DNA of 64,000 bases from the sequence record LR745206.1. One strand, given 5' to 3'. The number at the start of each line of letters is the position of its first letter. Position 1 is the first letter of the stretch. Below the pieces are notes generated by a model. That model was not told where the DNA came from. It saw only the letters and a program-made list of their open reading frames with translations, and did no database searches. The position numbers were made by a program, and so were the translations under genes. This document shows, piece after piece, positions 10 through 38,206 of the stretch.

Positions 10-378
10 ATGAAGTTATTCAAAACACTTGTTGAGAAGATGGGTTGTCTTGAAAGACCACTTTATTTTTTAGGTAATAATGGTAATGTATTTCATATGG
101 TACCATCCAGAGAATTCTTTAGAGAATTTTATGATGATTTGAAAATAAAATTTGATTATCATGTTAACTTCTCTGTTAGTGAGGATGAGGATAATAATGA
201 TTTCAATATGGTGATAAAGCTTGATCTTGATGATGATACATTATTAGAGATGTTAATTACTATTAAGTTTTCTGGTGGTGAGATGTCTGGTAAGCTATCT
301 GCTAAGCATAAGTTTGAATTATCAGACAATTTCAATTATTTAATATCCAAGAAACAATTAGGGGAAACCGAGGAATAG
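10..378 (+). CDS. hypothetical protein
   Basis: 122-aa ORF; no recognisable motif. Confidence 0.6.
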   Translation: MKLFKTLVEKMGCLERPLYFLGNNGNVFHMVPSREFFREFYDDLKIKFDYHVNFSVSEDEDNNDFNMVIKLDLDDDTLLEMLITIKFSGGEMSGKLSAKHKFELSDNFNYLISKKQLGETEE

Positions 379-387
379 TACATTCGG

Positions 388-397
388 AAATATATAC
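388..397 (+). promoter_or_regulatory. WAATATATA motif (putative phage late-type promoter)
   Basis: AAATATATAC 20 nt before ATG 418; motif recurs before many genes. Confidence 0.45.
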
Positions 398-417
398 CTT
401 AAAATTTTTAAAATTTA

Positions 418-3400
418 ATGGGTTTAAAATCAGGATTTCCAACATATCCAAGTGGAATTAACTACGCAGTTTCTTTCAGCTTCCCAGGTCCAAGTAGTGG
501 TATATCAAAATCAGTTGGTGCTAATGGTGCTTCTGCTTTAATGGTGCCAAATGCTAATTTTTTAGTTGAATTTATAAAGGGTAATCTAGGTATATCTGAT
601 GGTATGTTGAAGAGCATGATGTTCAAGAACATGAATTCACCAGTTGCCTCATCAAATGAGATGGTTTTTAGAAGTTTTTCGGAAACTAATAAACTTAATC
701 TAGATAGTGATAGTTTAAAATATAAGAAAGGTAATAAGTTTTCTTTACCAAAAGACCAAGTTAAATTGAGCCCGGAAAATGATCTTGTTGGTTTGAAAGG
801 ACTTGAAGTTACAACATTAAAATCAATATTTGAAACACAGAAGCCATATATGGAGGTGGCTAAATTGGTAATTGGTAATTTAGCTAAGATGGAGGATATT
901 TGCGCCAGAGTAATGCCATTACTTGGAGTACCACTTACAACAAAATCCAAAAAACCAAAGGGTAACCCCAATGCTATTGGTTATCAAGGAGGAGCTGTAT
1001 TAAAAAGTGAATTAGCTAGAATAGAAGCTATACGTAAAAAGGGCGGGGAAACTAAATTTGGACCTGGTTTGAATGGTGGTGTTATTAGAACAAAAAATTC
1101 AGGTGAAGATGATGGAACATCAACATCTAATGGTAATGGTAATAATGGTCCTGTTTCCACCTATGGTGATTGGAAAGTAATATCAACAGTTTATTCAACT
1201 GGTTTGTTCGATCCAAATAGTGACTACCTTTATAAATATATTAATTTACCACCTGATGATGAGTTAGGTAAAGATAAATCAGATTTAGATTTAGAATTGG
1301 ATGCGGAAGCTGATCCATATATGAAATATAAACCAAAAACAATAATATTTGGTATTTTTGATTCGAGAGGAAATCCATTAAATCCATTATCAAAGGTTAA
1401 GGGTATTGATAATCTTGGTGATAAGGTTGATACGAATCATAATAAAGCTGGGTGGATATTAAATTCACCTAAGTGGGTATTTAGACCAAATGTATTTCAA
1501 TGGCCAGTTTTTGCTGGAGCTCAATATTATGGATTAGATAGTGAAGGTAATGCTATAAAATATGGAGAGGGACAAACCAATGTACTCAATGGTGAAAGGG
1601 CTATACCAGGAACACCAATAGTAACTGGGTTTAATACAGTTGAGGAAACTGAGTATAAAGAATTTTTTTCCGATCTAATAAATATTAAAATGTTACAAGT
1701 TGATGATTTATCTAATTCTGAAAAAAATGATATATCGAATGAAATAAACTCTTCTTTCAATAGGAGTGTTGGTAGAAATGGTAAAGTTACATACCCAATA
1801 AAATCACATTTGGAGAATGTTTTTAATTGGGGTCAAGCTAAGTCATCATATTATCAGAGGATAGGAATACCAAGTGCATATCTACAAAAAAATGGATTAT
1901 CATTTCAAGATGATCCTTATCCAGAGAATTTAAAAAAATCTTTCAAACCATTGAAAATATACTCAAATGAAGCATCTGGTGATGAGAAGTTAAAAGCTTA
2001 TGCTAGATCAAAAGGAAGACCTGAGTCTGATGCAGGTTGGATATGGATTGATCCAGAAGCAGATTATATAACTAAAGTAATAAGAGTAGATCCTACTACG
2101 AAGATAAAATATCAGTACCAACAAGGTGAACCAGAAATAGAAAGTGAGATAAAATCTTTTGTTAAAAATGTTGCTGTTTTTGAATTATCCGATAATAGAG
2201 AATTTAATATAGAAGTTTATAGAAGAATAGGATCAACTACTGATGAATACACAGAATTTGAAATATCAAATAATGTTACTAGTTATAATTTGGAAAATTG
2301 GAATTATGTCGATAATGATGGTATCATATCACAATTTGGTGTTGTTAATGAAGAACCAATTATAAACAATTCAAATTCATACAAAATAACTATGTGGGGT
2401 GATACACCAACAGAATATTATAATAATGGTGATAACTTTTTTTTATCAACTGATGTGGTTGGTAATGCCCTTCAAATAGATGAGGTTAGGAAGGTAGATG
2501 ATAAGTGGTCATTTTATAAATCAGAAGTTGATTTAACAAATGCTCCAAATGGTGTTGAATTACTAACCTCATCTGAGTTGGTAACACTATTCAATAACTA
2601 TACAATCAATAGTGGTTATGTTTTGACACTAACGGTTCCTACCACAACCGGTACAGGTTCATCAGCCTCGACATCAAACACTATTTATACAATAGTAGCA
2701 TCAGCAGTATTCTCAAATAGACAAAATATAACACAAGATGGAAAACAAAGATTGATTGATAAGTCATTAGTAGAGGTTGAGAATGGGTTTATAACTAAAT
2801 GGTATTACATGACACCGAGTGATGATAATAGTGACTACGGTAATGGTAATTGGAACGGTGGTTTACCAAATAATGGTATAAGAAGAAGTATAGTAGTTGA
2901 TGTGAATACAATTGGTGGTAATGTAAATACACCAACAGACTCATCCAGTGATACTAATATTCCACAATTTCAAATAAGAGTTAGAGATGATGATTCTACT
3001 GGTCGAATTATAGATCCATCTAAAATATTAAATACAGAATTGACAAAAGAAGATGCTTTTTCTGATGATAAATATGGACATGGTTCACTTGATGACCAAC
3101 AAAGAATAGATGTTATAAAAAGATATATGTTAACAGAACTTGATACTGAGTCTTATTATATAATTGAAGGTATATTACCGGAATTTGCAGATGATGCTGG
3201 TAGATTTAAATTTCCAGGTAATTCCCAAAATGGAAATCAACCAGCTGGTGGAGGTGGTGGAGGTTATTATAAACTACCACATGCTATTGGTGCTATGAAA
3301 GTTTTTATGAGTATAATTACTGATATATTCTCTAAACTAATACCATTAATTAAAAAGATAATATCTATGTTTAAAAATCCAGCAAGTTTTGTTACTGAGA

Positions 3401-4893
3401 TAATATCAGAACAAATGGGTAAGGGATTTGCTTTTGCTTTATCTGAATCTAAGCAAGCATTTTCTAGTGGGAAGCAATTTAATGTTTCTGGTGGTGATAA
3501 GAGAGAAAAGAAACAAAAAGTTAGAGTCTTACAAGATCACTTTAAGGCTTCTAGTTTATCAAACTTTGTTTTTGTAAAAGATGATGGTAAATTTGCAAGT
3601 GTATTAGATGGTGTCGCTAGTATACCATTTAGTATTTTTGGTAAAAGTTTAACTTTTGGTATGGAGATGAATTTTGGTAACCTACCAAGTTCACCTATAA
3701 AACTATCATATGCGACTAATAGTTTGAATAGTAAAAGTTTACAATCATTTATTTCACCTGAATCATTTGATAGTACAAACGCTTCAAATTTAACATCACA
3801 ATTAGGTGGTATTAATAATAATACATCAACCAATAATCAATATCCATTTAATCCAAATAATTTAGGTGATGATAAAAATAATGGTAATAATACAGACGAT
3901 TATATTAATAAGACAAAGATTGAATTTGAAGATGGGACATCTATATTTATTGAGAATAATGAATTGAGTAGTTTTGTTGTTGATAATAGTAGTAAATATG
4001 ATTTTATTTATGTAACAGAGGATGTTAAAAATAAAATAAACGAAGCTGATAGTCTAATAGAGACTGGTGATGAGGACAATTTACTAAAAGCTCAAAGTAT
4101 TCTAGATGATGTTTCTAAAAAAGATCCAAATAATAAAGCTATAGATGAGAGAAAGTCTGATGTTAAAAATAAACTTGGTAGGATACAGGGTGGTGATCAA
4201 CCATTATTGAAAATGCTACTTGGTCTAGTTACACTTCCTATAAAAATATTAGGTGGTATACTTGAGTGGATAATGGATTTTTTCAAAAGTTTAACAAATC
4301 CATTAACATTACCATCAAAGATAAAGGAGTTTTTGTCATTTTCATGGATAACACAATTCTTCTCACCAACTGGTCTATTAGAGATGATTGGTATAAAATT
4401 TGACCCTAGTAAGATAACTTCTTTAGATTTAAGTCAATTTTTAAGTGTTGCCTTTGGAGCTAAATTACCAACATTTACAAAGGAACAGTTTGCTGCTATT
4501 GATCCAAAGATGGGATTAAGATTTATGACAGCTTTATTTTGCTTTGTTGAGAATTTAATAAATGCGATAATAGATTTTATTTGGTCAACATTGGGTATTG
4601 AGGCTGTTATACCACCACCTCATATAAAACTATGTTCTGATACTGATATTGGATCAATGAAACCAGAAGATATAGCTAAGATTCTGAGTGGTGAAATACC
4701 AAGTGGACAAACAAAAAATTATGTTGATGTTGATGGTGATGGTGTTGCGGATGTAATAGAAGATGATGTATTTAAAGGATTTATATATGAGGTTAAGTTG
4801 CCAAGTGGTGAGAAAAAAGAATTCCTTAATAGGGAAGCATTGGATGAATTTATTGGCGAACACAAGGATTTAAATTATGACTTTGAATTCTAA
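418..4893 (+). CDS. large hypothetical protein, possibly virion-associated
   Basis: 1491-aa ORF; N/G/T-rich linkers and two amphipathic helical blocks in the C-terminal third; function not recognised. Confidence 0.6.
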   Translation: MGLKSGFPTYPSGINYAVSFSFPGPSSGISKSVGANGASALMVPNANFLVEFIKGNLGISDGMLKSMMFKNMNSPVASSNEMVFRSFSETNKLNLDSDSLKYKKGNKFSLPKDQVKLSPENDLVGLKGLEVTTLKSIFETQKPYMEVAKLVIGNLAKMEDICARVMPLLGVPLTTKSKKPKGNPNAIGYQGGAVLKSELARIEAIRKKGGETKFGPGLNGGVIRTKNSGEDDGTSTSNGNGNNGPVSTYGDWKVISTVYSTGLFDPNSDYLYKYINLPPDDELGKDKSDLDLELDAEADPYMKYKPKTIIFGIFDSRGNPLNPLSKVKGIDNLGDKVDTNHNKAGWILNSPKWVFRPNVFQWPVFAGAQYYGLDSEGNAIKYGEGQTNVLNGERAIPGTPIVTGFNTVEETEYKEFFSDLINIKMLQVDDLSNSEKNDISNEINSSFNRSVGRNGKVTYPIKSHLENVFNWGQAKSSYYQRIGIPSAYLQKNGLSFQDDPYPENLKKSFKPLKIYSNEASGDEKLKAYARSKGRPESDAGWIWIDPEADYITKVIRVDPTTKIKYQYQQGEPEIESEIKSFVKNVAVFELSDNREFNIEVYRRIGSTTDEYTEFEISNNVTSYNLENWNYVDNDGIISQFGVVNEEPIINNSNSYKITMWGDTPTEYYNNGDNFFLSTDVVGNALQIDEVRKVDDKWSFYKSEVDLTNAPNGVELLTSSELVTLFNNYTINSGYVLTLTVPTTTGTGSSASTSNTIYTIVASAVFSNRQNITQDGKQRLIDKSLVEVENGFITKWYYMTPSDDNSDYGNGNWNGGLPNNGIRRSIVVDVNTIGGNVNTPTDSSSDTNIPQFQIRVRDDDSTGRIIDPSKILNTELTKEDAFSDDKYGHGSLDDQQRIDVIKRYMLTELDTESYYIIEGILPEFADDAGRFKFPGNSQNGNQPAGGGGGGYYKLPHAIGAMKVFMSIITDIFSKLIPLIKKIISMFKNPASFVTEIISEQMGKGFAFALSESKQAFSSGKQFNVSGGDKREKKQKVRVLQDHFKASSLSNFVFVKDDGKFASVLDGVASIPFSIFGKSLTFGMEMNFGNLPSSPIKLSYATNSLNSKSLQSFISPESFDSTNASNLTSQLGGINNNTSTNNQYPFNPNNLGDDKNNGNNTDDYINKTKIEFEDGTSIFIENNELSSFVVDNSSKYDFIYVTEDVKNKINEADSLIETGDEDNLLKAQSILDDVSKKDPNNKAIDERKSDVKNKLGRIQGGDQPLLKMLLGLVTLPIKILGGILEWIMDFFKSLTNPLTLPSKIKEFLSFSWITQFFSPTGLLEMIGIKFDPSKITSLDLSQFLSVAFGAKLPTFTKEQFAAIDPKMGLRFMTALFCFVENLINAIIDFIWSTLGIEAVIPPPHIKLCSDTDIGSMKPEDIAKILSGEIPSGQTKNYVDVDGDGVADVIEDDVFKGFIYEVKLPSGEKKEFLNREALDEFIGEHKDLNYDFEF

Positions 4894-7953: not shown

Positions 7954-8810
7954 TGATAGAAACACCATTCAACTATACCGGTTCAAAATTCAAACTACTT
8001 GGTCAGATATTACCAGAGCTTGATTACACAAAACCATATTTTGTGGATTTATTTTCTGGTGGTGGATCAGTTTATACTAATGTATTGGATAAATATGAAA
8101 GAATTATTTCTAATGATATAATCGGTGATCTTATAGGTGTACATAGTTCTTTATTAGAGTCAGATGATATCATTGGTGAGACTAAAGGTATATCACCAGG
8201 TAAATCCAACCCAGATGGATTTGGAGCTCTTAGGAGTGATTATAATGAAAATCCAACACCAGCAAAATTGTGGGCTTTGATGTTATCATCTACGAATAAT
8301 ATGATGAGATTCAATCAAAAATTCAAATATAATCAAACTTATGGTAATCGTGGTTGGAACTCTAATACTGACAAAAAAGTAGAGTCATTTATTAATCATA
8401 TTAGAAAATATAAAGATAAGATAAATTTCACATCAAAAACATTTGATGAGATAGGAATACCACCAACACTTGGTAAATCAAATAAATTCATGTTTTATTG
8501 TGATCCACCTTATGGAAGAATTAAGAATGTGGATGGTACAATGGCTAAGAAGCAGATATCCGAAGCTGGTTATAATGCTTTTTGGAAGAAAGATGATGAT
8601 TTGAGACTATATGATTATTTAAAATCAATTGATGAGATGGGATCATCTTTCATGGTATCTGGTGTTTTAGAACATAATGGGGAAACTTGTTGGATGCTTG
8701 ATAAGCTTATAGATAATGGTTATAATTATACGGTTTTATCTTTTGATTATAATAAAGTATCACGTAAAGGAGACAAGGAAACAAAAGAAATAATAATCAA
8801 AAACTATTAA
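7953..8810 (+). CDS. dam: DNA adenine methyltransferase (Dam/D12 class), orphan
   Basis: FNYTGSK, FVDLFSGGGSV (motif I), DPPY (motif IV). Confidence 0.9.
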   Translation: MIETPFNYTGSKFKLLGQILPELDYTKPYFVDLFSGGGSVYTNVLDKYERIISNDIIGDLIGVHSSLLESDDIIGETKGISPGKSNPDGFGALRSDYNENPTPAKLWALMLSSTNNMMRFNQKFKYNQTYGNRGWNSNTDKKVESFINHIRKYKDKINFTSKTFDEIGIPPTLGKSNKFMFYCDPPYGRIKNVDGTMAKKQISEAGYNAFWKKDDDLRLYDYLKSIDEMGSSFMVSGVLEHNGETCWMLDKLIDNGYNYTVLSFDYNKVSRKGDKETKEIIIKNY

Positions 8811-9271
8811 CTCTTTAGTATCTGACAAGAGCAAAATTTAATATTTTCTATATCAATATAACCATTCTTCTTAGATAATGTTTTTAGATGTAGATGTGTT
8901 TTACTTAAAACATCATCCTTGTTAATTTCGGATAAATTATATATCTTATTAGTTATCACTAATGTATATTCACCATCACTTACAATAACTCTACACTTAA
9001 TATTATTAACACCACAAATGTCTATGAATCTTATTAATTCCTCATTTATATCATACAAATTAAAAAGTCCAATAGATTGTCCATCTAATGTATAACCACT
9101 ATCACCTTTCTTATATATGATAAACTCATCAGAAAAATTATAACTATCTGGTGATAAATGAAGAACTTCATAACCATCATCTTTCAATTCTAAAAATATA
9201 TCTTCGATATCTACAATTGTCTTTTTAGTTTCAAAAATAGAATGTTCTTTATACAATTTCAAATATTTCAC
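8807..9271 (-). CDS. hypothetical protein with CTS-like N-terminus (DIFxELxDDG family)
   Basis: start re-assigned to GTG 9271 giving MKYLKLYKEHSIFE; TAATATATAC at 9275-9284 just upstream. Confidence 0.7.
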   Translation of the reverse strand: MKYLKLYKEHSIFETKKTIVDIEDIFLELKDDGYEVLHLSPDSYNFSDEFIIYKKGDSGYTLDGQSIGLFNLYDINEELIRFIDICGVNNIKCRVIVSDGEYTLVITNKIYNLSEINKDDVLSKTHLHLKTLSKKNGYIDIENIKFCSCQILKS

Positions 9272-29380: not shown

Positions 29381-29421
29381 AAAAACCCTGAATTGTCGGT
29401 TGGCTCCGGTTCAGGGTTTTT
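29381..29421 (+). promoter_or_regulatory. hairpin immediately upstream of HTH/Rep-like gene
   Basis: AAAAACCCTGAA...TTCAGGGTTTTT 12-bp stem ending 2 nt before ATG 29424. Confidence 0.5.
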
Positions 29422-29423
29422 TT

Positions 29424-30380
29424 ATGCAACAAACTTATATCAAATACTTTTATAATTCCTACCCTCAAGCAAAGAGGTTGAAATTAGATAGGGAGTATTT
29501 GTTTTATTTGAAACTAAAGGCATTTCAAACAGGAATGCTTCATAAAGGTACTATCATAAAAGATATACAATCAATTACAACTTACTCTCCAGGGTCTATT
29601 AGTCTTTATATACAGAGGCTTATTAAATGCGGCTTTATCACCCCTTTTAAAAAGAAAGGTAAGATAGTAGGTTATAGAGTTATATCTTATAAAAAAGCAT
29701 TAAAGTTATTAAAAGTTAAAATACGCTTTACCGGTGATAATCTAAATATAGCCAAAGAGCATAGATTTAACAGAATCCTTTTTGAAAATCTAAAAGATAA
29801 TAAACTCTTTAAGAATTATATAGAATTACAGGATATCTATAATAATAGAAAAAAACAGGTATATAAAGAGAAAAACAATATTGTAAAAAAAATAAAGTAT
29901 CATAAAGATACACTAAAAGATAAAATAGGAGAAGTAGAAATATTAAAAAGAAAAACATTTACTAATGAAGATAGAAAAAAAAGAAATGAAATATTAAAAG
30001 AAATAGAAAATAAGGAAAGTAAAATAAATCAATTAAAAGGCGAACTCAAGTCTGTTTTGACAAAAGAGAGTGAATCATTTAAACTTAGTTGTAAACGCTT
30101 TTCTAATCTAATGGGATATAAATCTATACAACAAGGATCTTTACTTGAGAGACGAGGTGAAAAACATGGTTTTTTAAGTATAAAAAGATCCCTTGAGGTA
30201 ATAGAAAGAGGTGTTAAATATGTAGATTTTATTTCTATGAAATCAATAGAGTCATCCTTATATTGGATGTTTGGTAATGTAGTGGATAATAAATGTAATA
30301 AATTACTCTTTACTGATTTCTTTTTTTCTTTTTTTGAGTCTAATAAACAAAATCAATTGAACCCTATACCTACGATATAG
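29424..30380 (+). CDS. basic winged-HTH protein, possible replication initiator
   Basis: SPGSISLYIQRLIKCGFI resembles a wHTH; very K-rich; central coiled coil; followed by an AT-rich gap. Confidence 0.45.
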   Translation: MQQTYIKYFYNSYPQAKRLKLDREYLFYLKLKAFQTGMLHKGTIIKDIQSITTYSPGSISLYIQRLIKCGFITPFKKKGKIVGYRVISYKKALKLLKVKIRFTGDNLNIAKEHRFNRILFENLKDNKLFKNYIELQDIYNNRKKQVYKEKNNIVKKIKYHKDTLKDKIGEVEILKRKTFTNEDRKKRNEILKEIENKESKINQLKGELKSVLTKESESFKLSCKRFSNLMGYKSIQQGSLLERRGEKHGFLSIKRSLEVIERGVKYVDFISMKSIESSLYWMFGNVVDNKCNKLLFTDFFFSFFESNKQNQLNPIPTI

Positions 30381-30631
30381 ATTCAATTTTTAAAACTATG
30401 ACAAATCATATTTTAATTTTGTTTATTATCATAATAATTATTCTAATTATTAGAGAATAAATTCTCTTTTTTATTTCAAATGATAGTATTAAAAAAATAT
30501 CAAATAAATCTTTCTATCTAATAATGAATAAGTTACATAAAAAGTATAAATAAAATTTTTTTATATGAATAATGTTTCTTACTTTTACCTCATGATTTAG
30601 CAACTAAGCCACTTCTTTAAAACTTGTAAAT

Positions 30632-30890
30632 ATGAAAACTCCAAATTTTAAACTTGAAAACGGATACGCACTTGTAACAGTAGATAACGTAGATAACAAT
30701 GAAGTCGTTATTGAAAATATAAAAGTGTATGAGCAACGCAAAGGAACGGGTCGTCAACTTATCGAAATGGTTAAGGATTATGCAAGAGAGTTAGGCTTGC
30801 CAATCGGATTATATGCAGAGCCATCACGGAATTTCCTACGAAGAACAGAACCTTTTTGTTTTATTTTTGTGGGATAGCAAATTAATTTTG
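30632..30890 (+). pseudogene. GNAT acetyltransferase, frameshifted
   Basis: IENIKV..QRKGTGRQLIE...LYAEP; expected FY..CG continuation appears only in another frame (LFYFCG). Confidence 0.6.
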
Positions 30891-30911
30891 AAAAAATTAA
30901 AAATAACATAT

Positions 30912-31472
30912 ATGAAAAATCAAGAACAAGAATTTAGAAAAAAATGTAAGGAATGTTTACCAGAAAATATAATGGTAGATGGTATAAAATATAAATTATC
31001 AGCAGAAATGTTGATGGGTGGTAAAACCTTCCGAATTAGTTACGGAGAATTTGATGGAGATACTTTTAATTGGGATAATAAACATTTGGATATATTTTAT
31101 GCCATTTGTGAAATTATACCTGAAAAAAAGGAATACAAACAAGGAGAATTACATGATGGAACTATTTATCTGACGAATTTAGATGATGCAATTAGTGATT
31201 GTACTAAAAAACTAAACGAGGTTAGATATGAGCAACTTGACGAAATAGTAACAAGAGAAACAGAATTTAATAGAGAACTAACATCATTGTTGAATAGATA
31301 CAGTAAAGAAAATGGAAGTGATACACCAGATTTTATACTCACAAATTACTTGATTGGTTGTTTGAGAATATTCAACTACACTCAAAATGCAAGAGAAAAA
31401 TGGTATGGCAGAGAAAAGGAAGTTGTTACTGATTTATTGAGGATGGAAAAAAATAAAACAAAAAAGATTTAA
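30912..31472 (+). CDS. hypothetical phage protein (C-terminal ENGSDTPDFIL domain)
   Basis: ATG 30912; LLNRYSKENGSDTPDFILTNYL..CL; followed by attC-like site 1. Confidence 0.7.
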   Translation: MKNQEQEFRKKCKECLPENIMVDGIKYKLSAEMLMGGKTFRISYGEFDGDTFNWDNKHLDIFYAICEIIPEKKEYKQGELHDGTIYLTNLDDAISDCTKKLNEVRYEQLDEIVTRETEFNRELTSLLNRYSKENGSDTPDFILTNYLIGCLRIFNYTQNAREKWYGREKEVVTDLLRMEKNKTKKI

Positions 31473-31500
31473 CCGATGAACTTTACTACGAAGCACGAAG

Positions 31501-31645
31501 GCATTGCTACTAACGTTTTGCACCTATGCGAAGACAGGGTTTAAAAAGCACTTACCTGTCGGCTCGCACAAACTTAATTAAGTGTTTCAAACTTTCGGCT
31601 ACCACTACACCCCTGCTTTTGCATAGGTGCTGTTATAAGCCGTTT
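31501..31645 (+). repeat. attC-like site 1
   Basis: TAAC 31511-31514, GTTTT spacer, GCACCTATGC/GCATAGGTGC perfect 10-bp stem, T, GTTA 31632-31635. Confidence 0.8.
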
Positions 31646-31659
31646 TTATTCTAATTATT

Positions 31660-32034
31660 ATGACAAAAAAATATAGTATATCAGTAGTCGGAAAAGATTT
31701 ATTTCCACAAAGAATGCACTTAGAAAAAGAGATAGGTGAGGTTTTTTATGAGCAAATTATTACAGTATTGGAATTGACTGGAGAAGAAGTTAGCGATGGT
31801 GGAATTACCGATTACAGATTAGGCGTTTATTTGGATTCAAAAAATGGGGGAACACGAAAATTCAATCTTGAAGAAAAGATATTTGATAAAATAATTGAAA
31901 ACTTTGGTCACAAATTTTATGACAAGCTAAAAGGCTATTCTAAACGTGAGCAAAAGAAAGGTAGTGAGATTTTATTTCAACTTCATCAAGGAAATATAAC
32001 TTTAAAGGATTTTGATGATAGGCTTGGCTATTAA
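31660..32034 (+). CDS. cassette A hypothetical protein
   Basis: 124-aa ORF; stop codon abuts the inverse core site. Confidence 0.7.
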   Translation: MTKKYSISVVGKDLFPQRMHLEKEIGEVFYEQIITVLELTGEEVSDGGITDYRLGVYLDSKNGGTRKFNLEEKIFDKIIENFGHKFYDKLKGYSKREQKKGSEILFQLHQGNITLKDFDDRLGY

Positions 32035-32142
32035 ATGGCTTATAACGGTTTGCGTATAAGAGATGTGGCACTTATACGAATGTTTAAATCAAGGCATAAA
32101 GCCCAATGTGCCATATCTTTTATACGCTGTTATGTGCTTGGC
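32033..32142 (+). repeat. attC-like site 2
   Basis: TAAC 32043-32046, GGTTT, 20-bp stem GCGTATAAGAGATGTGGCAC/GTGCCATATCTTTTATACGC (with G-T pairs), T, GTTA 32129-32132. Confidence 0.8.
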
Positions 32143-32176
32143 GGTTTATCAGCACTAAATTTAATTTGAAAACGAA

Positions 32177-32395
32177 ATGACAAAAGACGAAATTATCAAA
32201 CAACGCTATCCTTTTTACAACCCTGACATTGCACAAAAGGATATTGAAATTAACGCAGAAGCAGTTAAAGAACTGATGGAAGCATATTGGATTGACCAAT
32301 TAAAAGGGTTGGTTGAAGATTTAGGACAAGTGCATCCTGAATATATTATTGAACGTATAAAGGATGAAATTTCGTCTTTGGAACACGGAATATAG
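32177..32395 (+). CDS. cassette B hypothetical protein
   Basis: 72-aa ORF; stop codon abuts the inverse core site. Confidence 0.65.
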   Translation: MTKDEIIKQRYPFYNPDIAQKDIEINAEAVKELMEAYWIDQLKGLVEDLGQVHPEYIIERIKDEISSLEHGI

Positions 32396-32463
32396 CCTTG
32401 CATATAACGGTCGGGTATAAACCATCGTTTTAATGTGGTTTATGCCTTGTTACCTGCTGGTGC
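32395..32463 (+). repeat. attC-like site 3
   Basis: TAAC 32405-32408, GGTCG, GGTATAAACCA/TGGTTTATGCC, loop TCGTTTTAATG, GTTA 32449-32452. Confidence 0.8.
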
Positions 32464-32522
32464 GGTTTATTTAGCAGGATGTTGATTTGAAAACGAATAG
32501 AAAATTTAAAAAGTTTTAGAGT

Positions 32523-33248
32523 ATGAGATATACAGGAAATAAAAGTAGAATAGCCAAACACATTTTACCTATAATATTAAATGGTAGAAAACCTAATCAG
32601 TGGTTTGTTGAACCCTTTGTAGGTGGTGCAAATATTACGGATAAAGTTGAAGGGTTAAGACTTGCTTCAGACTACAATAAACATTTGATTGAATTTTATA
32701 AAGCATTGCAAGATGGTTGGACACCACCATTAAGAATAAGTAAAAATGAATATGACGATATAAAACAAAATCAAGAACGAGATAGTAAAATGACTGTGTG
32801 GGCAGGAATATGTTGTAGTTATGGTGGAAGATGGTTTGGTGGGTTTTTGAGTGACTATCAAGAATCAAAAAGATTAAAAAACGGAAGATTACCTAATCAT
32901 CAAGACGAGGCAAGGCGTAGTTTGATAACTCAAATACCTAATTTAATATCAGTTCATTTTATTTACTCTGATTATAAGAATTTAGAAATACCACCTAATT
33001 CAATTATTTATTGTGACCCACCATACGAAGGAACTGTTAAATATAAAAACGGAATAAACCACAACGAATTTTGGAATTGGTGTAGAGAAAAAGCAAATCA
33101 AGGACATACAATTTTTATAAGTGAATACAATGCACCTACTGACTTTGAATGTATTTGGCAAATGGAATTAAGCAATACGTTAAGTAAACAGAATAATTTT
33201 AAGAGCGTGGAAAAACTTTTTAAATTTTCTCCCACAAATGTTCAATAG
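32523..33248 (+). CDS. cassette C: DNA adenine methyltransferase (D12 class)
   Basis: MRYTGNKSR, FVEPFVGGAN, YCDPPY, FISEY. Confidence 0.9.
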   Translation: MRYTGNKSRIAKHILPIILNGRKPNQWFVEPFVGGANITDKVEGLRLASDYNKHLIEFYKALQDGWTPPLRISKNEYDDIKQNQERDSKMTVWAGICCSYGGRWFGGFLSDYQESKRLKNGRLPNHQDEARRSLITQIPNLISVHFIYSDYKNLEIPPNSIIYCDPPYEGTVKYKNGINHNEFWNWCREKANQGHTIFISEYNAPTDFECIWQMELSNTLSKQNNFKSVEKLFKFSPTNVQ

Positions 33249-33261
33249 TAGCAGTATCGTA

Positions 33262-33329
33262 GCACTTGCAGGTAACGGACGGTGCTATACGCTCGTTTTA
33301 ATGGCGTATAGCACGTGTTACAGGTAGTA
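33262..33329 (+). repeat. attC-like site 4
   Basis: TAAC 33273-33276, GGACG, GTGCTATACGC/GCGTATAGCAC perfect stem, loop TCGTTTTAATG identical to site 3, GTTA 33317-33320. Confidence 0.8.
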
Positions 33330-33382
33330 TGGATTTATACCGCAAAACTTAATTAGAAGTACAAACTAAAAAGAATTTAAAA

Positions 33383-34291
33383 ATGAGCGTAGGCAAAAAA
33401 GAAAAAATAAACGTATTATCCTATTTTGATGGCATTAGCTGCGGACAGATAGCGTTAGAACGTGCTGGATTAGAAATTGAAAATTACTTTGCTTGTGAGA
33501 TAAAACCACACGCAATTGAAACTACATTGATAAATTACCCGAACACAAAACACTTAGGTAGTGTTACGGAAGTAGATTTGGATAATTTACCATTTATAGA
33601 TTTATTTATTGGGGGTTCTCCGTGTAAAGGGATTTCAAGATTGAATAAAAATCAAGAAGGACTTGAACATTCTGAAAGTAAATTATTTTGGGTTTATGTT
33701 GATACGCTTGAAAAATTGAGAGTTAATAACCCAAACATTATATTCTTATTGGAGAACACTCACGGAAATAAAGAAGCAACAAATACTATTACAGAGGTTT
33801 TAGGAGTTAAACCAATTTCGATAAATAGCAAACTTGTTTCAGCACAAAATAGACCACGCTATTATTGGACTAACATACCAAACATTACTCAACCAATTGA
33901 TAAAGGAATTACGACAAAAGATGTGTTTGATTATAGTGGTGAATTAGCACACGAATGTAGAGTGAAATGGCTTACAAACGAAAGCGGAATTAAAAGTGTT
34001 GCAAATGGATATACAAGAGTAAATCCATTTCCTAAAAGCGGATGCTTAACAGCTAATGGACATAGAAAATGGAATGAAAACTATTTATTGAAAGATGGTG
34101 TTTATCGCTACCTTTCGCAAACAGAAATTGAAAAGTTGCAGACTTTACCAATAGGATATACAAGTAATTTATCATTTGATGATGCTTATGATGTTATCGG
34201 AGATGGATGGACAGTAGATGTAATTGCTCATATTTTTTCTTTTTTAAAGGAGGGAAAATTTTTAAATTCTTTTTCAGACGAAAATGTTTAA
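33383..34291 (+). CDS. dcm: cassette D: C5 cytosine DNA methyltransferase
   Basis: VLSYFDGISCG (motif I), GGSPC (IV), LLEN (VI), QNRPRYYW (VIII), IGDGWT (X). Confidence 0.9.
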   Translation: MSVGKKEKINVLSYFDGISCGQIALERAGLEIENYFACEIKPHAIETTLINYPNTKHLGSVTEVDLDNLPFIDLFIGGSPCKGISRLNKNQEGLEHSESKLFWVYVDTLEKLRVNNPNIIFLLENTHGNKEATNTITEVLGVKPISINSKLVSAQNRPRYYWTNIPNITQPIDKGITTKDVFDYSGELAHECRVKWLTNESGIKSVANGYTRVNPFPKSGCLTANGHRKWNENYLLKDGVYRYLSQTEIEKLQTLPIGYTSNLSFDDAYDVIGDGWTVDVIAHIFSFLKEGKFLNSFSDENV

Positions 34292-34304
34292 TCGAAGCAC
34301 CCCC

Positions 34305-34317
34305 TATTACCTGTAAC
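34305..34317 (+). repeat. terminal attC-like half-site (inverse core only)
   Basis: TATTACCTGTAAC, complementary to the cassette D start GTTACAGGTAGTA; no hairpin follows. Confidence 0.7.
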
Positions 34318-34319
34318 TT

Positions 34320-34680
34320 ATGATTAAAGAAGAAGTAAAATATTCGGAATTTCAAGAAAATATCTTCAACGCAGTAATGGTTACTAATAAGAATATAGTA
34401 GTAAAAGCGACTGCAGGGTCAGGTAAAACATTTACTACTATTGAGATATCTAAATTAATACCCCCTAATAAGAGTTGTATTTTTGTAGCTTTTAATAAAT
34501 CTATTGTTGAAGAATTACAATTAAAATTATCTCCTAATATAGAATGTTCTACAGTACATTCAAAAGGTATGAGTGTACTTACTTCATTTTTTAAATCTCG
34601 TTTAGTTTTAAATGAATTTAAAACTTTCAGATTTGCAGAAAAATACTTAAAAGATCTGGATAGAAAAGAGAAGTTTATTA
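34320..34680 (+). pseudogene. N-terminal fragment of a UvrD/Rep (SF1) helicase
   Basis: SEFQ, ATAGSGKT (Walker A), VAFNKSIV (Ia), STVHS (Ib); after ~120 aa the ORF becomes antisense of the neighbouring gene; no Walker B. Confidence 0.75.
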
Positions 34681-37600
34681 AGATCCTACGACCAAGTGGT
34701 TTAGAAATTGGCTTAGGTTCTTCAACTGGTTTCTGTGGATCATACTCATCCTTCAATGATTTTATTAGTTCTTTTAAGAAATCTTTGAAAGTGGTTTCCA
34801 TCTCTCTTTCTTTACCCTTCTCAGCTTTTGATCTATCAAAACTAATACGGCTCAAAAAATCAAATGAATCTTTTAACTCTGGTTTATTCATTCTAAGGGA
34901 TCTAGGAGCTTCCGCTTTTCTGTAACTAAATACCTTTTCAACTAAAGTTTTGAACTCATCAAGTTTATTAGTAGATCCTAAATAGGATAAAATATATTTA
35001 AATGCTAATAATCTAATAGTTTTAGGTTTCTTAACATCTTCCTTCGTTTTAGAATCTCTACCCCAATATGAAGTATTATCCTTTATAGTACCAATTGAGT
35101 TAACATATTTTTCAAATTTTACTTTATCATATAGATAATAACAAACTTGTAAATTATACTGAACCCATTGCTCACTTTCATCAACATGCTTTAGTGTCCA
35201 TTCATATAAAGATTTTAAGTTATCATCAGTAAGTTCTAACTCTTTAAAATCTCTACTTGATCTAGATATTACTTTAGCTATTGTGTGTAATAAACTACTA
35301 TCAAATGTTGCTCCTCTACCTTTAAAATCCCACTCAGATATTTTATCAGCATCCGATTCTGTTTCACCTTTCCCTACTTTTAACTTATCTAAATTAGTTA
35401 AAATCATCAACACCATTAAATCATATTCACCTTTATCATATCTAAATACGGATAAACCATCAACATAATCTTTGAAATAAGTATCATACCATTTCTTTGG
35501 TGTAATACGACTTGAATATCCATAACCAGATTTACTAGAAGCATTTTTTAAGTCACTTAATAACTTATATTGATATTCCTTCTTCTTAGCAAAAGATATG
35601 GCTTCCTCTAGTTTATCTTCAAAACCACTACCTTTAAACAGTGTTCTATAAGATGTTGTTGAATACTCACGCATTTCATTTTTACTTCTAACTATTGCTA
35701 TTAAATGAGTATAGGCATTTTCTAAATCTAACTTTCTTTCAACCAAGGTCTTGTAGTATTCTTCTGAATAGGTTATTGTCTCTTCACCTTCTCTATTAGT
35801 GTGTCTGGATTTGGCACCCTTTAATGATTCCCTAATTATATCAATTTCCTCATCCTTACCTATCGTGTATCCTAATCCAGTTAAATATTCAATTATTTTA
35901 TTTATATCACTTGGATACCTAGTATCATGAAACATTTTTTTAACAACCTTAGACATTGTTCCTATTTCATCATAATCTTTTTTAGTAAATCCTAATTCAT
36001 TGGCATATTTAATAGTTGTACTAACATCAAAGTCACTATATGATCTCTTATCTTTCTCACTAGCCGTTCTTAACTCACCTAAACCCTTTATAGATATAGC
36101 TTTCTTAACCTTTTCTTTTATTATATTCCAAATATCTGGAACCCTACTCATACCATTCTTAGTAGAAATAAATGACCAAAAGTCAACATATAAATTAATT
36201 GATGTTTTGTCCTTTATAGTATATTGTTCCCATCTCTCATCCGCCATATAAGTTGGTTTTACCCTCTCCTCAATGATATTATTTACCTTATCACTAATAT
36301 AATCTGTCAATAATTTATGAGCATTCTTATCAACCAATTTCAACAATTCATTAAAACTTGATAACTTAGCATATGATTTAATATCATCCATACTACCATT
36401 ACCATATATACCAAATATATTAATAAATACATTTAAACTCTCTTTATCAATTATTTTATAACCAATTTTATATAATGAATCAATTACTGACTTATTTAAT
36501 GGTAACTTTTCTCTAAATATATCACTTAATGTTACTATATTACTCCTAGTTTTTGCTAACTTTTTACTTGCTATTTTTCTACCTCCACTATCTTGTGGTA
36601 ATGGTTCTTTTGGTAACAATTGAACTAATTCCGGACCAATATCAAAAAATAACATTGAGTTAAGTCTAAATAAAGATTTACCACTATCAGAATTACGATC
36701 TATTCCTAATTTTTCCCAATCATCACTCCAAAATGTAGCAGTCAATCTATTACGAATGGAAATTTTATCTGGATAGTCCTTAAATAAATCTATCATCAAT
36801 TTTGTTTCTCTATCTAATGCTGATGAATAACTCTTAACTATTTCCTCTTTGGTAAATCCAACAGAAAATAAATTATCTATTTTTAGATTTGATGATTGTT
36901 TTATTATACCAGTTTTAATCAATTCATCCTTTGTGAAATATGATAATGAAGCAGGATCTATATTTGTATATTTGTATAATTTATTATCAATTACTTCCTC
37001 TTTAGTTAATTTTAATATAACAAATAGGTTAGATAAATTTGTTCTATTATCCAATCTTTGAATACATTTTTTAGATAAAATAGTTTCGTTATCCAATTCC
37101 TTTAGTTGATCCCAACTCAATTCAGTTTTTGATAAAATATCCAATTTATCTTTCTCTTCTTTGGTAAAATATTCTGTATCATTTTTCTTTGGTCGCATTC
37201 TATAACCATATCTATCCTTGTTTTTAAAAACCAACTTCTTGTTTATAATATCATCTTTGGATATACCATAATCTAAGAGTATGCTAACTGGTATATCATT
37301 CCAGTCTGTCATTGCTTTCAAAGTATCAATTGACACATATAAATCTCTAAGTAAAACTCCCCTTTCCTTTAGAATATTTTCAATTTTATCCTTACTTACT
37401 GACCCATCATATTTATCATGTGCTGTTGTGTAATCAAAATGTGTTGTTAAACCTATCTTGGACATTTTATCATTCTTACCAAAATTATCAACTAAGAATA
37501 TAACCCATTGTAGCCCACCATTAGCATATGAATCAAACGTAGAAGATGAACGAACAATACACCAAGATGTATCACCACCCAATTTCTTTATCTGATTATA

Positions 37601-38206
37601 GTTTACTTGACATATTATAATATCATGTTCATCATCAGCAACTTTTATATAAGCTCCTGTATCTTCCACTTGTTTTAATAACTTACCAAAGTTACTATCT
37701 AATTGTGATTGTAATAATCGTTTAGCCGCTTCGACCAAAGTTTTTTTATCCCTGAAAGAAGATATCTTTCTTATCAACGAAGGTAAGGATTTATTCTTAC
37801 CCAATTGGTTTAATAATATTAAATCATTCTCATCTGTTAATGAGAAAAATGCTTTCTGGTGTGATGGGAATTGATTGATTACTTTCTTAGCACTTGATTT
37901 AATTTTAGCTTGTTCAACTTGGTCCCAAAATTGTTCAACTGATTCTAAATCAACAATAGATTTAGTGAAATAAGTTATTAAACCACTCTTATCTTTAGCA
38001 ATCTCCCAGATGTTTTTTAACTCATCCATTGGTTGCTTATCAACATATCTTAACTTGGTGAACCACTGAGTATATCCATCGTTACCTTTAAGCATATCTC
38101 GAATAGCTAGATAATCAGTATCGGTTTGTTCTATTCCTAATTTTTTAAGTATAGCTTTAGCACCAATAACGTTTTCGTTTAAATGGAATCTTGAGATATA
38201 TTTCAT
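34352..38206 (-). CDS. very large protein with CTS-like N-terminus; natural 3' end probably lost
   Basis: MKYISRFHLNEN; TAATATATAC at 38211-38220; last ~110 codons (below ~34680) are antisense of the helicase fragment. Confidence 0.7.
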   Translation of the reverse strand: MKYISRFHLNENVIGAKAILKKLGIEQTDTDYLAIRDMLKGNDGYTQWFTKLRYVDKQPMDELKNIWEIAKDKSGLITYFTKSIVDLESVEQFWDQVEQAKIKSSAKKVINQFPSHQKAFFSLTDENDLILLNQLGKNKSLPSLIRKISSFRDKKTLVEAAKRLLQSQLDSNFGKLLKQVEDTGAYIKVADDEHDIIICQVNYNQIKKLGGDTSWCIVRSSSTFDSYANGGLQWVIFLVDNFGKNDKMSKIGLTTHFDYTTAHDKYDGSVSKDKIENILKERGVLLRDLYVSIDTLKAMTDWNDIPVSILLDYGISKDDIINKKLVFKNKDRYGYRMRPKKNDTEYFTKEEKDKLDILSKTELSWDQLKELDNETILSKKCIQRLDNRTNLSNLFVILKLTKEEVIDNKLYKYTNIDPASLSYFTKDELIKTGIIKQSSNLKIDNLFSVGFTKEEIVKSYSSALDRETKLMIDLFKDYPDKISIRNRLTATFWSDDWEKLGIDRNSDSGKSLFRLNSMLFFDIGPELVQLLPKEPLPQDSGGRKIASKKLAKTRSNIVTLSDIFREKLPLNKSVIDSLYKIGYKIIDKESLNVFINIFGIYGNGSMDDIKSYAKLSSFNELLKLVDKNAHKLLTDYISDKVNNIIEERVKPTYMADERWEQYTIKDKTSINLYVDFWSFISTKNGMSRVPDIWNIIKEKVKKAISIKGLGELRTASEKDKRSYSDFDVSTTIKYANELGFTKKDYDEIGTMSKVVKKMFHDTRYPSDINKIIEYLTGLGYTIGKDEEIDIIRESLKGAKSRHTNREGEETITYSEEYYKTLVERKLDLENAYTHLIAIVRSKNEMREYSTTSYRTLFKGSGFEDKLEEAISFAKKKEYQYKLLSDLKNASSKSGYGYSSRITPKKWYDTYFKDYVDGLSVFRYDKGEYDLMVLMILTNLDKLKVGKGETESDADKISEWDFKGRGATFDSSLLHTIAKVISRSSRDFKELELTDDNLKSLYEWTLKHVDESEQWVQYNLQVCYYLYDKVKFEKYVNSIGTIKDNTSYWGRDSKTKEDVKKPKTIRLLAFKYILSYLGSTNKLDEFKTLVEKVFSYRKAEAPRSLRMNKPELKDSFDFLSRISFDRSKAEKGKEREMETTFKDFLKELIKSLKDEYDPQKPVEEPKPISKPLGRRILINFSFLSRSFKYFSANLKVLNSFKTKRDLKNEVSTLIPFECTVEHSILGDNFNCNSSTIDLLKATKIQLLLGGINLDISIVVNVLPDPAVAFTTIFLLVTITALKIFS

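Follow-up and report, generated by a model that had tools for sequence, protein, structure and literature searches.

The stretch of phage DNA described here (64,000 nucleotides, below called the window) covers positions 558001-622000 of LR745206.1, an uncultured phage assembly with a whole length of 634,780 bp, which we take to be a member of the huge-phage set of Al-Shayeb et al. 2020. It carries on its plus strand an array of four single-gene cassettes and four folded sites packed within 1.8 kb, which together recall the gene cassettes and recombination sites of integrons. All four sites share one grammar, namely TAAC, a 5-nt spacer starting with G, a stem of at least 10 bp, 1-2 nt and GTTA. 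The sites, with their scores by a covariance model (R1), and the cassettes are located as follows:

Site 1: 31511-31635, plus strand, long form of 125 nt, TAAC GTTTT GCACCTATGC ... GCATAGGTGC T GTTA.
Site 2: 32043-32132, plus strand, medium form of 90 nt with a 20-bp stem, matching the grammar, R1 33.8 bits.
Site 3: 32405-32452, plus strand, short form of 48 nt with loop TCGTTTTAATG, R1 81.3 bits.
Site 4: 33273-33320, plus strand, short form of 48 nt with loop TCGTTTTAATG, R1 76.6 bits.
Cassette A: 31515-32046, plus strand, hairpin 1, right arm TAAGCCGTTTTT, open reading frame (ORF) 31660-32034, left arm TTAAATGGCTTA, TAAC.
Cassette B: 32047-32408, plus strand, hairpin 2, ORF 32177-32395, left arm, TAAC.
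Cassette C: 32409-33276, plus strand, hairpin 3, ORF 32523-33248, left arm, TAAC.
Cassette D: 33277-34317, plus strand, hairpin 4, ORF 33383-34291, left arm TATTACCTG, terminal TAAC.

The first-pass annotation had proposed four hairpins of this grammar, and all of them were found on the plus strand at the positions listed. The loops of sites 3 and 4 are identical, and the stem of site 3 includes one G.T pair. Cassettes A and B encode proteins of 124 and 72 residues without a family match, while cassette C encodes a D12-class N6-adenine DNA methyltransferase (Pfam PF02086, PHROG 56), whose gene is 74% identical at the DNA level to gp54 of Polaribacter phage P12002L, and cassette D a C5-cytosine DNA methyltransferase (Pfam PF00145). 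The two orphan methyltransferases likely protect the phage DNA from restriction. The array closes with TATTACCTG-TAAC at 34305-34317 (TAAC at 34314-34317), and no hairpin follows.

The flanks of the sites have a peculiar relationship, which the first-pass annotation had also described. At any single site of the window, the left and right flanks do not pair with each other; instead, the 12 nt past GTTA pair with the 12 nt before the closing TAAC of the same gene, with 10, 9, 10 and 11 of 12 positions paired in cassettes A, B, C and D, respectively (Watson-Crick plus G.T pairs over the 12 nt beyond the core). Non-cognate combinations of arms within the window gave 4-9 of 12, and the cognate assignment was the best among the 24 permutations, with a total of 40 versus at most 35 for any other. 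With DNA energy parameters, each hairpin joined to its own cassette end was predicted to form one continuous helix of -21 to -27 kcal/mol, compared with -10 to -20 kcal/mol for the junctions as they stand in the genome, and for each of the four hairpins the cognate left arm was the best of five choices.

The folded sites of the window belong to a wider family. An IMG/VR search with a pattern constrained in its 5' half and loop alone (TAACGGNCG-N11-TCGTTTTAATG) matched 30 phage loci, where by our own estimate about one or fewer would be expected by chance. In 25 of these loci, at least 10 of the 11 free positions pair with the 11 nt that follow the loop, and in the other five the pairing includes a 1-nt bulge; because the pattern required no stem, this test of pairing is unbiased. 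GTTA follows in 25 of the 30. Among 24 short sites, compensatory changes were found at 10 of the 11 stem pairs, and the covariation score was 0.688 versus 0.163 for shuffles, with none of 500 shuffles scoring as high; the hairpins are a real family, conserved in structure. Altogether, we collected 252 sites in 83 phage or metagenome-assembled genome (MAG) loci, most of them assigned to Bacteroidota; the largest array has 11 sites. Membership of the window sites is based on the grammar, on R1 for sites 2-4, on the long form for site 1 (long-form sites of ~125 nt are common to many related loci), on the cognate arms and on one sense ORF in each cassette. The strict grammar misses variants, such as the bulged stems of P12002L and the CAAC/GTTG cores of Polaribacter phage Leef_1, for which a covariance model or a relaxed scan is needed. 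Covariance-model scanning of other genomes, as the first-pass annotation had advised, recovered the family in P12002L and in further huge phages, with about eight sites in LR756500.1 and two weak ones in LR756502.1. When bacteria and archaea were searched at one genome per species, a 24-base pattern matched 29 contigs, all from MAGs and mostly short, of which about half were labelled Bacteroidota and most of the remainder are probably mis-binned phage contigs. Across these searches, the family appeared in phage contigs and small MAG contigs only, never in the bacterial genome of an isolate. The Bacteroidota repeat models of Rfam that had been suggested for comparison, such as Flavo-1, did not account for the sites: Rfam gave no gathering-level match in the window, nothing relevant at E<=10 in 31300-34500 and nothing relevant at E<=1 in four related arrays. 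A GAAGCA motif of loops and cassette ends was also considered and dropped, being only mildly enriched and of no fixed position.

The cassettes of the family are small and uniform in design. In 105 clean cassettes, the median length was 393 nt and the median ORF 93 residues, and the sense ORF was longer than the antisense one in 103. The cargo is very diverse and includes many DNA methyltransferases of several classes, which bears out the idea that such enzymes are frequent cargo, together with, as judged by eye, MazG-like, DUF3307-like and HNH proteins and many tiny proteins without assigned function. The complementarity of cassette ends is family-wide and well above that of random site pairs. 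The two arms of one cassette form on average 9.0 of 12 pairs, with 54% reaching at least 10, compared with a mean of 6.0 for the two flanks of one site and 5.9 for right and left arms drawn at random, both with ~3% reaching at least 10; this comparison is independent of how the sites were found. The low tail of the own-cassette scores is due to some intervals that hold two ORFs, that is, a missed site. Mismatches in the arms are strongly biased, with 120 G.T or T.G versus 6 A.C or C.A, and a G.T pair stands at arm position 7 in 63 of 74 cassettes. From the excess of G.T over A.C, the strand able to fold appears to be the gene-sense strand, "bottom" in integron orientation.

Several side observations concern the interior of the cassettes. 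Perfect inverted repeats of 19, 17 and 15 nt (32499-32517/33212-33230, 33368-33384/34258-34274 and 33395-33409/34231-34245) join the start-codon region of cassettes C and D to the last ~20 codons of the same gene, and family-wide an inner repeat of at least 12 nt was present in 19 of 65 cassettes versus 2 of 400 non-cognate controls; such repeats could be an extension of the recombination site or could mask the start of the mRNA. The two methyltransferase genes C and D, which are unrelated, share DNA at their 3' ends (33212-33253 and 34255-34299; AAAnTTTTTAAATT...AAATGTTnAAT...AGCA), and their proteins have similar C-terminal tails, KLFKFSPTNVQ and KFLNSFSDENV. Because the ends of the two genes are alike, the conserved cassette frame seems to extend into the coding sequence. 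In long-form sites, the ORF often has its start within the loop and extends across the 3' stem, GTTA and the right arm (for instance L021 6500-6752, as oriented, which equals L070; L030 1278-1404; L025 119-246; L046 5036-5162). L021 even holds an entire ORF of ~70 residues inside a hairpin loop, and directly after it in L021/L070 lies an empty cassette that has the arms GTTATATTCA...TGAATATAAC and no ORF.

Comparison of loci placed the boundaries of the cassettes at TAAC. A 460-nt cassette is shared by L030 and L016 at 95.7% identity, with unrelated sequence in the two loci upstream of its hairpin; at its downstream end, the homology breaks off exactly after ...CTGGTAAC, where L030 continues into an attI-like region and a recombinase gene and L016 into another hairpin. 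Likewise, cassette C aligns with L028 from the TAAC at 32405 to the TAAC at 33276 and no further. In nine pairs of sites, the hairpin and right arm are common and the left arms unrelated, with the switch falling within TAAC and the first bases of the spacer, so that a hairpin as a rule goes with the gene downstream of it. Site 2 has its hairpin and right arm in common with L019 and L024, where the left arm is different. A relative of cassette D, whose protein is 79% identical, is the last cassette beside the recombinase in L046, and its arms show a compensatory change from CAGGTAGTA/TATTACCTG to CAGGCAGTA/TATTGCCTG. Thus, the same cassettes do occur with different neighbours, as would be expected of the independent mobile units that the first-pass annotation had envisaged.

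Clustering of the ORFs of all loci by similarity gave one recurrent neighbour of interest, a tyrosine recombinase of 250-277 residues with Phage_int_SAM_4 and Phage_integrase domains (Pfam), in which the catalytic residues R, K, H, R, H and Y are invariant (alignment A1, two sequences). Among the NCBIfam models, XerA_Arch (archaeal XerA, "tyrosine recombinase/integron integrase") was the closest, followed by XerD and XerC, all below cutoff; the integron integrase model TIGR02249 matched in two separate stretches with 160 bits against a cutoff of 265. The enzyme aligns contiguously with a Pyrococcus XerC-like protein (4a8e), and it has 41 residues where IntI4 (PDB 2a3v) has 89, so it lacks the IntI-specific insertion. 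Searching IMG/VR with two of the recombinase proteins yielded 42 loci. Where the recombinase was at least 40% identical to the query and upstream DNA was available, almost every locus had from 1 to 10 sites immediately upstream; these lay on the strand of the recombinase gene and ran to within a few hundred bases of it, and no sites were on the opposite strand; the exceptions were L052 and L063, in which a strict scan of 10 kb upstream found no site.

The recombinase-linked arrays all end in the same manner, the last cassette closing with its left arm and TAAC and no hairpin following. Past this terminal TAAC lies a conserved region, entered here as one further feature:

Candidate primary-site region: past the terminal TAAC of recombinase-linked arrays (TAAC, then TAYTATATGTAAA).

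At 13 loci, exactly 52 nt separate the terminal TAAC from the recombinase ATG, with TACTATATGTAAAnAnCATCTGTAAACACCAATAAACTTAACACCTAAGACT directly after TAAC, and a second subgroup has TAAC followed by TATATTATATA... Column conservation is ~0.5 to the left of the terminal TAAC and 0.85 to its right. Recombinase genes 82-87% identical adjoin unrelated cassettes, and the 300 nt upstream compare at 0.62 between those loci, equal to the shuffled baseline of 0.60. The cassette ORFs point toward the recombinase and the primary site in all arrays. On these comparative grounds, we regard the conserved 52-nt region as a putative attI-like primary site. L037 adds two observations: a block of at least nine tRNA genes (110-3850) just upstream of its 11-site array, and a truncated copy of the recombinase (93 residues, 85% identical to the L021 enzyme) at 8753-9034 within a 2.3-kb cassette interval.

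Two cultured Polaribacter phages tie the family to earlier work. Leef_1, whose isolation host is Polaribacter sp. AHE13PA, holds a complete element (L117 4249-8858; NC_062750.1, 24390-28999), with five sites of core (C/T)AAC...GTT(G/A), cognate arms and a terminal AAAGC-TAAC followed by GCCCCTATATACGCACC, after which comes the integrase gp38, 33% identical to the query recombinase. Because of the CAAC/GTTG variant in this phage, only AAC/GTT is invariant across the wider family. The integrase of Cellulophaga phage Ingeline_1 (30% identical) was also considered, and no clear array was seen with it. P12002L, a virulent phage, was included in a survey of phage genomes with IntegronFinder and HattCI, where a cluster of attC sites lacking an integron integrase (CALIN) with two methyltransferases was reported (Qi et al. 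2023; PMC9892861). Its site P12002L_attC1 (TGCTAACGGCTACGGCTAAACGGTCGTTTTAATGCCGTTTTAGCCATTGTTA, from the primer table of PMC9892861) is a member of the present family, laid out as TGC-TAAC-GGCTA-CGGCTAAACGG-TCGTTTTAATG-CCGTTTTAGCC-AT-TGTTA with the same loop as the short sites, and was alone among the phage sites in yielding no verified recombinants with IntI1 (PMC9892861). That study handled the sites, two only and described as divergently oriented, as ordinary attC usable by bacterial IntI1, and reports neither a dedicated recombinase, an attI-like region nor the breadth of the family. The covariance model found five sites in P12002L, in two arrays with four methyltransferases and a Mom-like gene, and no recombinase was present in the two array regions examined. 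Both arrays (L084 5540-5620 and L116 5817-5890) end with TAAC and the same ~65-nt sequence (AACGGATAAAACAAGTTTTACCAAACTAAAAATGACTTAAAATCAATTAATTAAAGTTTGATTAT). This sequence corresponds to attC2 of Qi et al. 2023 (PMC9892861), where it was recombined by IntI1, and it may be P12002L's own terminal or primary site. The site type is thus not wholly new, one member having already been called attC. Our literature searches did not find the recombinase-linked phage system described and turned up only Qi et al. 2023 (PMC9892861).

The likeness to integrons extends to the general plan. In both, a tyrosine recombinase gene points away from an adjoining primary site and array, each cassette holds one ORF, the sites are imperfect hairpins of very variable length in which only AAC...GTT is strongly conserved, the start of a cassette pairs with its own end, and many arrays are orphans. 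The hallmarks of integron cassettes are both seen here, the start being complementary to its own end in the arms and the crossover, as placed by the TAAC breakpoints, falling at the conserved AAC/GTT. The crossover maps to the AAC side, which in integron orientation puts the hairpin at the end of its cassette farther from attI; when the recombinase is turned leftward, the junction reads TAAC-(1-2 nt)-stem-loop-stem-(5 nt) followed by GTTA, with the crossover at the GTTA side, which equals the integron order R''-L''...L'-R' with exchange between G and TT. Set against attC, the sites have an AAC...GTT core together with an inner helix, and their loops range from 11 to >200 nt.

There are also differences. 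The recombinase of 250-277 residues aligns contiguously with XerA/XerC/XerD and lacks the IntI-specific insertion, which in integrons contacts extrahelical bases of the folded attC; Escudero et al. 2016 reportedly tie this insertion to hairpin recombination. Integron cassettes are promoterless, directed away from attI and expressed from Pc; the phage ORFs are inverted, reading toward the primary site, and seem to have leaders of their own. In place of the symmetric unpaired central spacer of attC, the phage sites have a 4-nt bulge on one side, and they show no obvious extrahelical bases; the flanks of the core are not RYYY/RRRY, and the spacers of 5 versus 1-2 nt depart from textbook attC just as the first-pass annotation had remarked. 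Further distinctions are the G.T conserved at arm position 7, the short sites with a conserved 11-nt loop, the smaller cassettes (median as given above) and the carriers, which are phages. Among other known systems, the promoter-early stem-loop (PeSL) modules that Arbiol et al. 2010 are said to have described in T4-type phages also have repeated stem-loops flanking small accessory genes in plastic phage regions and are proposed to mediate gene shuffling; they are, however, considered to use homologous recombination without a dedicated site-specific recombinase, and neither end complementarity nor a fixed AAC/GTT core is known to belong to their definition. The pdif modules of Acinetobacter plasmids are gene modules bounded by inversely oriented Xer-type sites, but these are 28-bp double-stranded sites with conserved arms served by host XerC/XerD, whereas here the stem sequences vary freely and the structure is conserved.

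In LR745206.1 itself, a grammar scan and R1 found no site beyond the four, in either the window or the whole record, and the family recombinase was not detected by tblastn (none at E<0.01) or with a hidden Markov model built from 28 recombinases (none at E<=10). No attI occurs in the window, the terminal TAAC running directly into a helicase gene fragment. The four sites lie close together in a genome without the recombinase, and a sister site in P12002L has been called attC; the P12002L arrays are similarly rich in methyltransferases and without a recombinase in the regions examined. Our preferred reading, to which we give a probability of about 0.7, is that the region is an orphan array from a system of integron type by which Bacteroidota phages capture genes, with four intact cassettes and probably one decayed; as no recombinase is present, the array is CALIN-like. 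It is not a canonical integron: the family's recombinase has no IntI insertion, the ORFs are directed toward that gene, and the spacer is asymmetric.

The anatomy of the cassettes and their boundaries, the family with its covariation and the link to the recombinase are demonstrated by these comparisons. Each cassette is laid out in one fixed order: first spacer, hairpin and (N)T-GTTA, then a right arm of ~12 nt, a leader of its own, a single ORF and a left arm of ~12 nt, and last TAAC. From this anatomy, we infer a cycle in which the position of cleavage, the folding of single-stranded DNA, the circular intermediates and the catalysis by the recombinase are all putative. The Xer-like recombinase would cut at or beside TAAC and excise the cassettes, and once the circle was closed the two ends would come together on the gene-sense strand as a single long, imperfect hairpin. 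In it, an outer helix with a conserved G.T at position 7 would be followed by a TAACG/TGTTA helix, a bulge of 4 nt on the 5' side, a variable inner helix and a loop that is either the conserved 11-mer TCGTTTTAATG or a long insert. The recombinase would then insert cassettes at the primary site past the terminal TAAC, as IntI does with attC and attI. Being absent from LR745206.1, it would have to act there in trans, as the first-pass annotation had anticipated; the linkage of a tyrosine recombinase to arrays elsewhere fits this proposal. Every part of that annotation's interpretation that could be put to the test was supported. The cassettes of the huge phage could have been acquired as a block from another phage, or could be mobile only on co-infection by a phage that encodes the recombinase.

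The flanks of the array bear on how it arrived. Two features adjoin it:

Possible fifth, degenerate cassette: 30813-31514, plus strand, a 219-residue ORF (30813-31472) with a cassette-type 3' end.
Helicase gene, 5' fragment, outside the cassette system: 34320-34690, plus strand, starting 2 nt past the terminal TAAC.

On the left, the 3' end CGAAGCA...GGCATTGCTAC-TAAC resembles the ends of cassettes C, D and L030, and the flank next to site 1 (31497-31514) thus looks like the 3' end of a further, decayed cassette; neither a 5' hairpin nor a GTTA arm was found for it, and the 219-residue ORF has PHROG matches of unknown function only. The array probably has a fifth, decayed cassette on this side. 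On the right, the ORF of the helicase fragment spans 34320-34925 on the plus strand and loses similarity to helicases at ~34,690; its Pfam ResIII/UvrD match is confined to the N-terminal part, ~110-123 N-terminal residues match helicase families, and residues 2-110 align with positions 147-256 of the 776 of PHROG 1967. Import as a block from another phage is suggested by this cassette-like end left of site 1 together with the truncated helicase on the right. The G+C content of the island is 0.32-0.35, versus 0.27-0.30 in its flanks. Comparison with other huge phages around the array yielded no synteny, because the flanks are not conserved at the DNA level, and proteins A and B, the 219- and 326-residue ORFs and the helicase fragment had no relatives among the collected loci.

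Further out, a minus-strand ORF of 1284 residues without a family match (34352-38206) meets the helicase fragment head-on with its 3' end, and its last ~115 codons resemble antisense read-through; the junction may be either a scar left by recombination when the island was imported or a join made in assembly. To the left, a plus-strand block (29400-31472) lies between two minus-strand blocks and contains a 326-residue ORF without a match, two ORFs of 81 and 219 residues overlapping in different frames, and, at 30380-30630, a gap very rich in A+T. This block may be part of the same imported island.

Several points weigh against the reading of the region as a cassette array. All support for it is comparative anatomy, and circle junctions, excision and recombination are putative. 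Since the IntI insertion is missing, recognition of a single-stranded hairpin by the enzyme is putative only, and the G.U pattern on the sense strand fits an RNA structure equally well. Cassette D and its L046 relative share their arms and not their hairpin, that of L046 being long and containing the start codon, so the rule that a hairpin goes with the downstream gene is not absolute. The arrays found by the hairpin pattern mostly had no recombinase in the short stretches of DNA examined, and the Leef_1 integrase has been read as a marker of a temperate lifestyle (Bartlau et al.; PMC8776804). Moreover, the site grammar requires a stem, which makes the paired percentage in the test of 24 short sites partly circular; in that test only the diversity of pair types counts as evidence, and the arm-pairing and 11-mer tests are free of the circularity. 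The main rival reading is a regulatory role, in which the hairpins and arms are RNA or DNA elements (terminators or processing sites, a promoter for each gene, and pairing between the 5' and 3' ends of the mRNA), the genes are shuffled by homologous recombination, as proposed for PeSL, and the recombinase serves lysogeny or dimer resolution. The wobble pairs lie on the transcribed strand, the inner repeats over start and last codons resemble features of an mRNA, ORFs often begin within the long hairpin loops, arrays stand without a recombinase in LR745206.1 and the two P12002L regions, and Bartlau et al. (PMC8776804) treat the integrase as a temperate marker. However, homology breaks exactly at TAAC beside the recombinase gene rather than at scattered points, the arrays have a constant polarity and abut the conserved 52-nt region upstream of that gene, and the hairpins lack the T-run of intrinsic terminators. 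The stems vary freely with few core bases fixed, as is typical of a folded site recognised by protein, and an empty cassette with arms and no ORF occurs in L021/L070; we consider this explanation unlikely, while taking it seriously.

An ordinary integron CALIN, with cassettes captured from bacterial integrons and served by a bacterial IntI, would account for the AAC...GTT core, the hairpins of variable length, the single-ORF cassettes and the cassette-specific complementarity of the ends, all of which match the logic of attC, and for the prediction of P12002L_attC1 as attC by HattCI/IntegronFinder (PMC9892861). That very site, however, gave no verified recombinants with IntI1 (PMC9892861), the family is confined to phage and small MAG contigs in our searches, with no isolate bacterial genome among them, its own recombinase is without the IntI insertion, the ORFs are directed at the primary site instead of away from it, and the unequal spacers leave no symmetric bubble; this origin is therefore quite improbable. 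Movement of the units as single strands by an HUH nuclease of the IS200/IS605 type, or their inversion between inverted repeats, is suggested by the conserved tetranucleotide at a fixed distance 5' of the hairpin, which resembles IS608-type ends, and by the inverted repeats that flank each gene. Against this, similarity clustering of ORFs, in which no dedicated search for HUH domains was made, gave only the tyrosine recombinase and a replication (primase/helicase-type) protein as recurrent neighbours and no such nuclease; each unit has a single type of hairpin rather than the two distinct ends of IS200/IS605-type elements, and the predominance of sense ORFs (103/105) gives no sign of inversion, so that we give such a mechanism very little credence. 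Least credible of all is a product of chance or of assembly: the truncated helicase that abuts the array and the slightly higher G+C of the island could mark a chimeric join, but more than 80 independent loci, two cultured phages among them, show the same grammar, and a mis-join would bear only on which genome carries the array.

Returning to the cassette-array reading, we also favour, with somewhat less assurance than for the window alone, its extension to the phages at large: Bacteroidota phages, from 37-kb Polaribacter phages to those of >600 kb, would share a previously unrecognised integron-like system with an Xer-like recombinase that lacks the IntI insertion, a 52-nt primary site, sites that fold on the sense strand, and single-gene cassettes that are self-expressed, often encode anti-restriction methyltransferases and pass between co-infecting phages, the window being an orphan array deposited in a huge phage. 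A gene-capture system of this kind looks barely described so far. The complete system in the cultured Polaribacter phage Leef_1 makes the reading testable, and the compact pair of recombinase and site could be of use in engineering. Integrons are the textbook case of bacterial gene capture, and their integrase is thought to have gained its activity on single-stranded hairpins through one specific insertion; if our reading is true, there would be a second route to cassette capture, either by recognition of hairpins or by another mechanism with the same anatomy. The "integrase" genes of marine flavobacterial phages, now taken as evidence of a temperate lifestyle, would then read differently, and the spread of small accessory genes among unrelated phages of Bacteroidota, above all of orphan methyltransferases that overcome restriction, would have an explanation.

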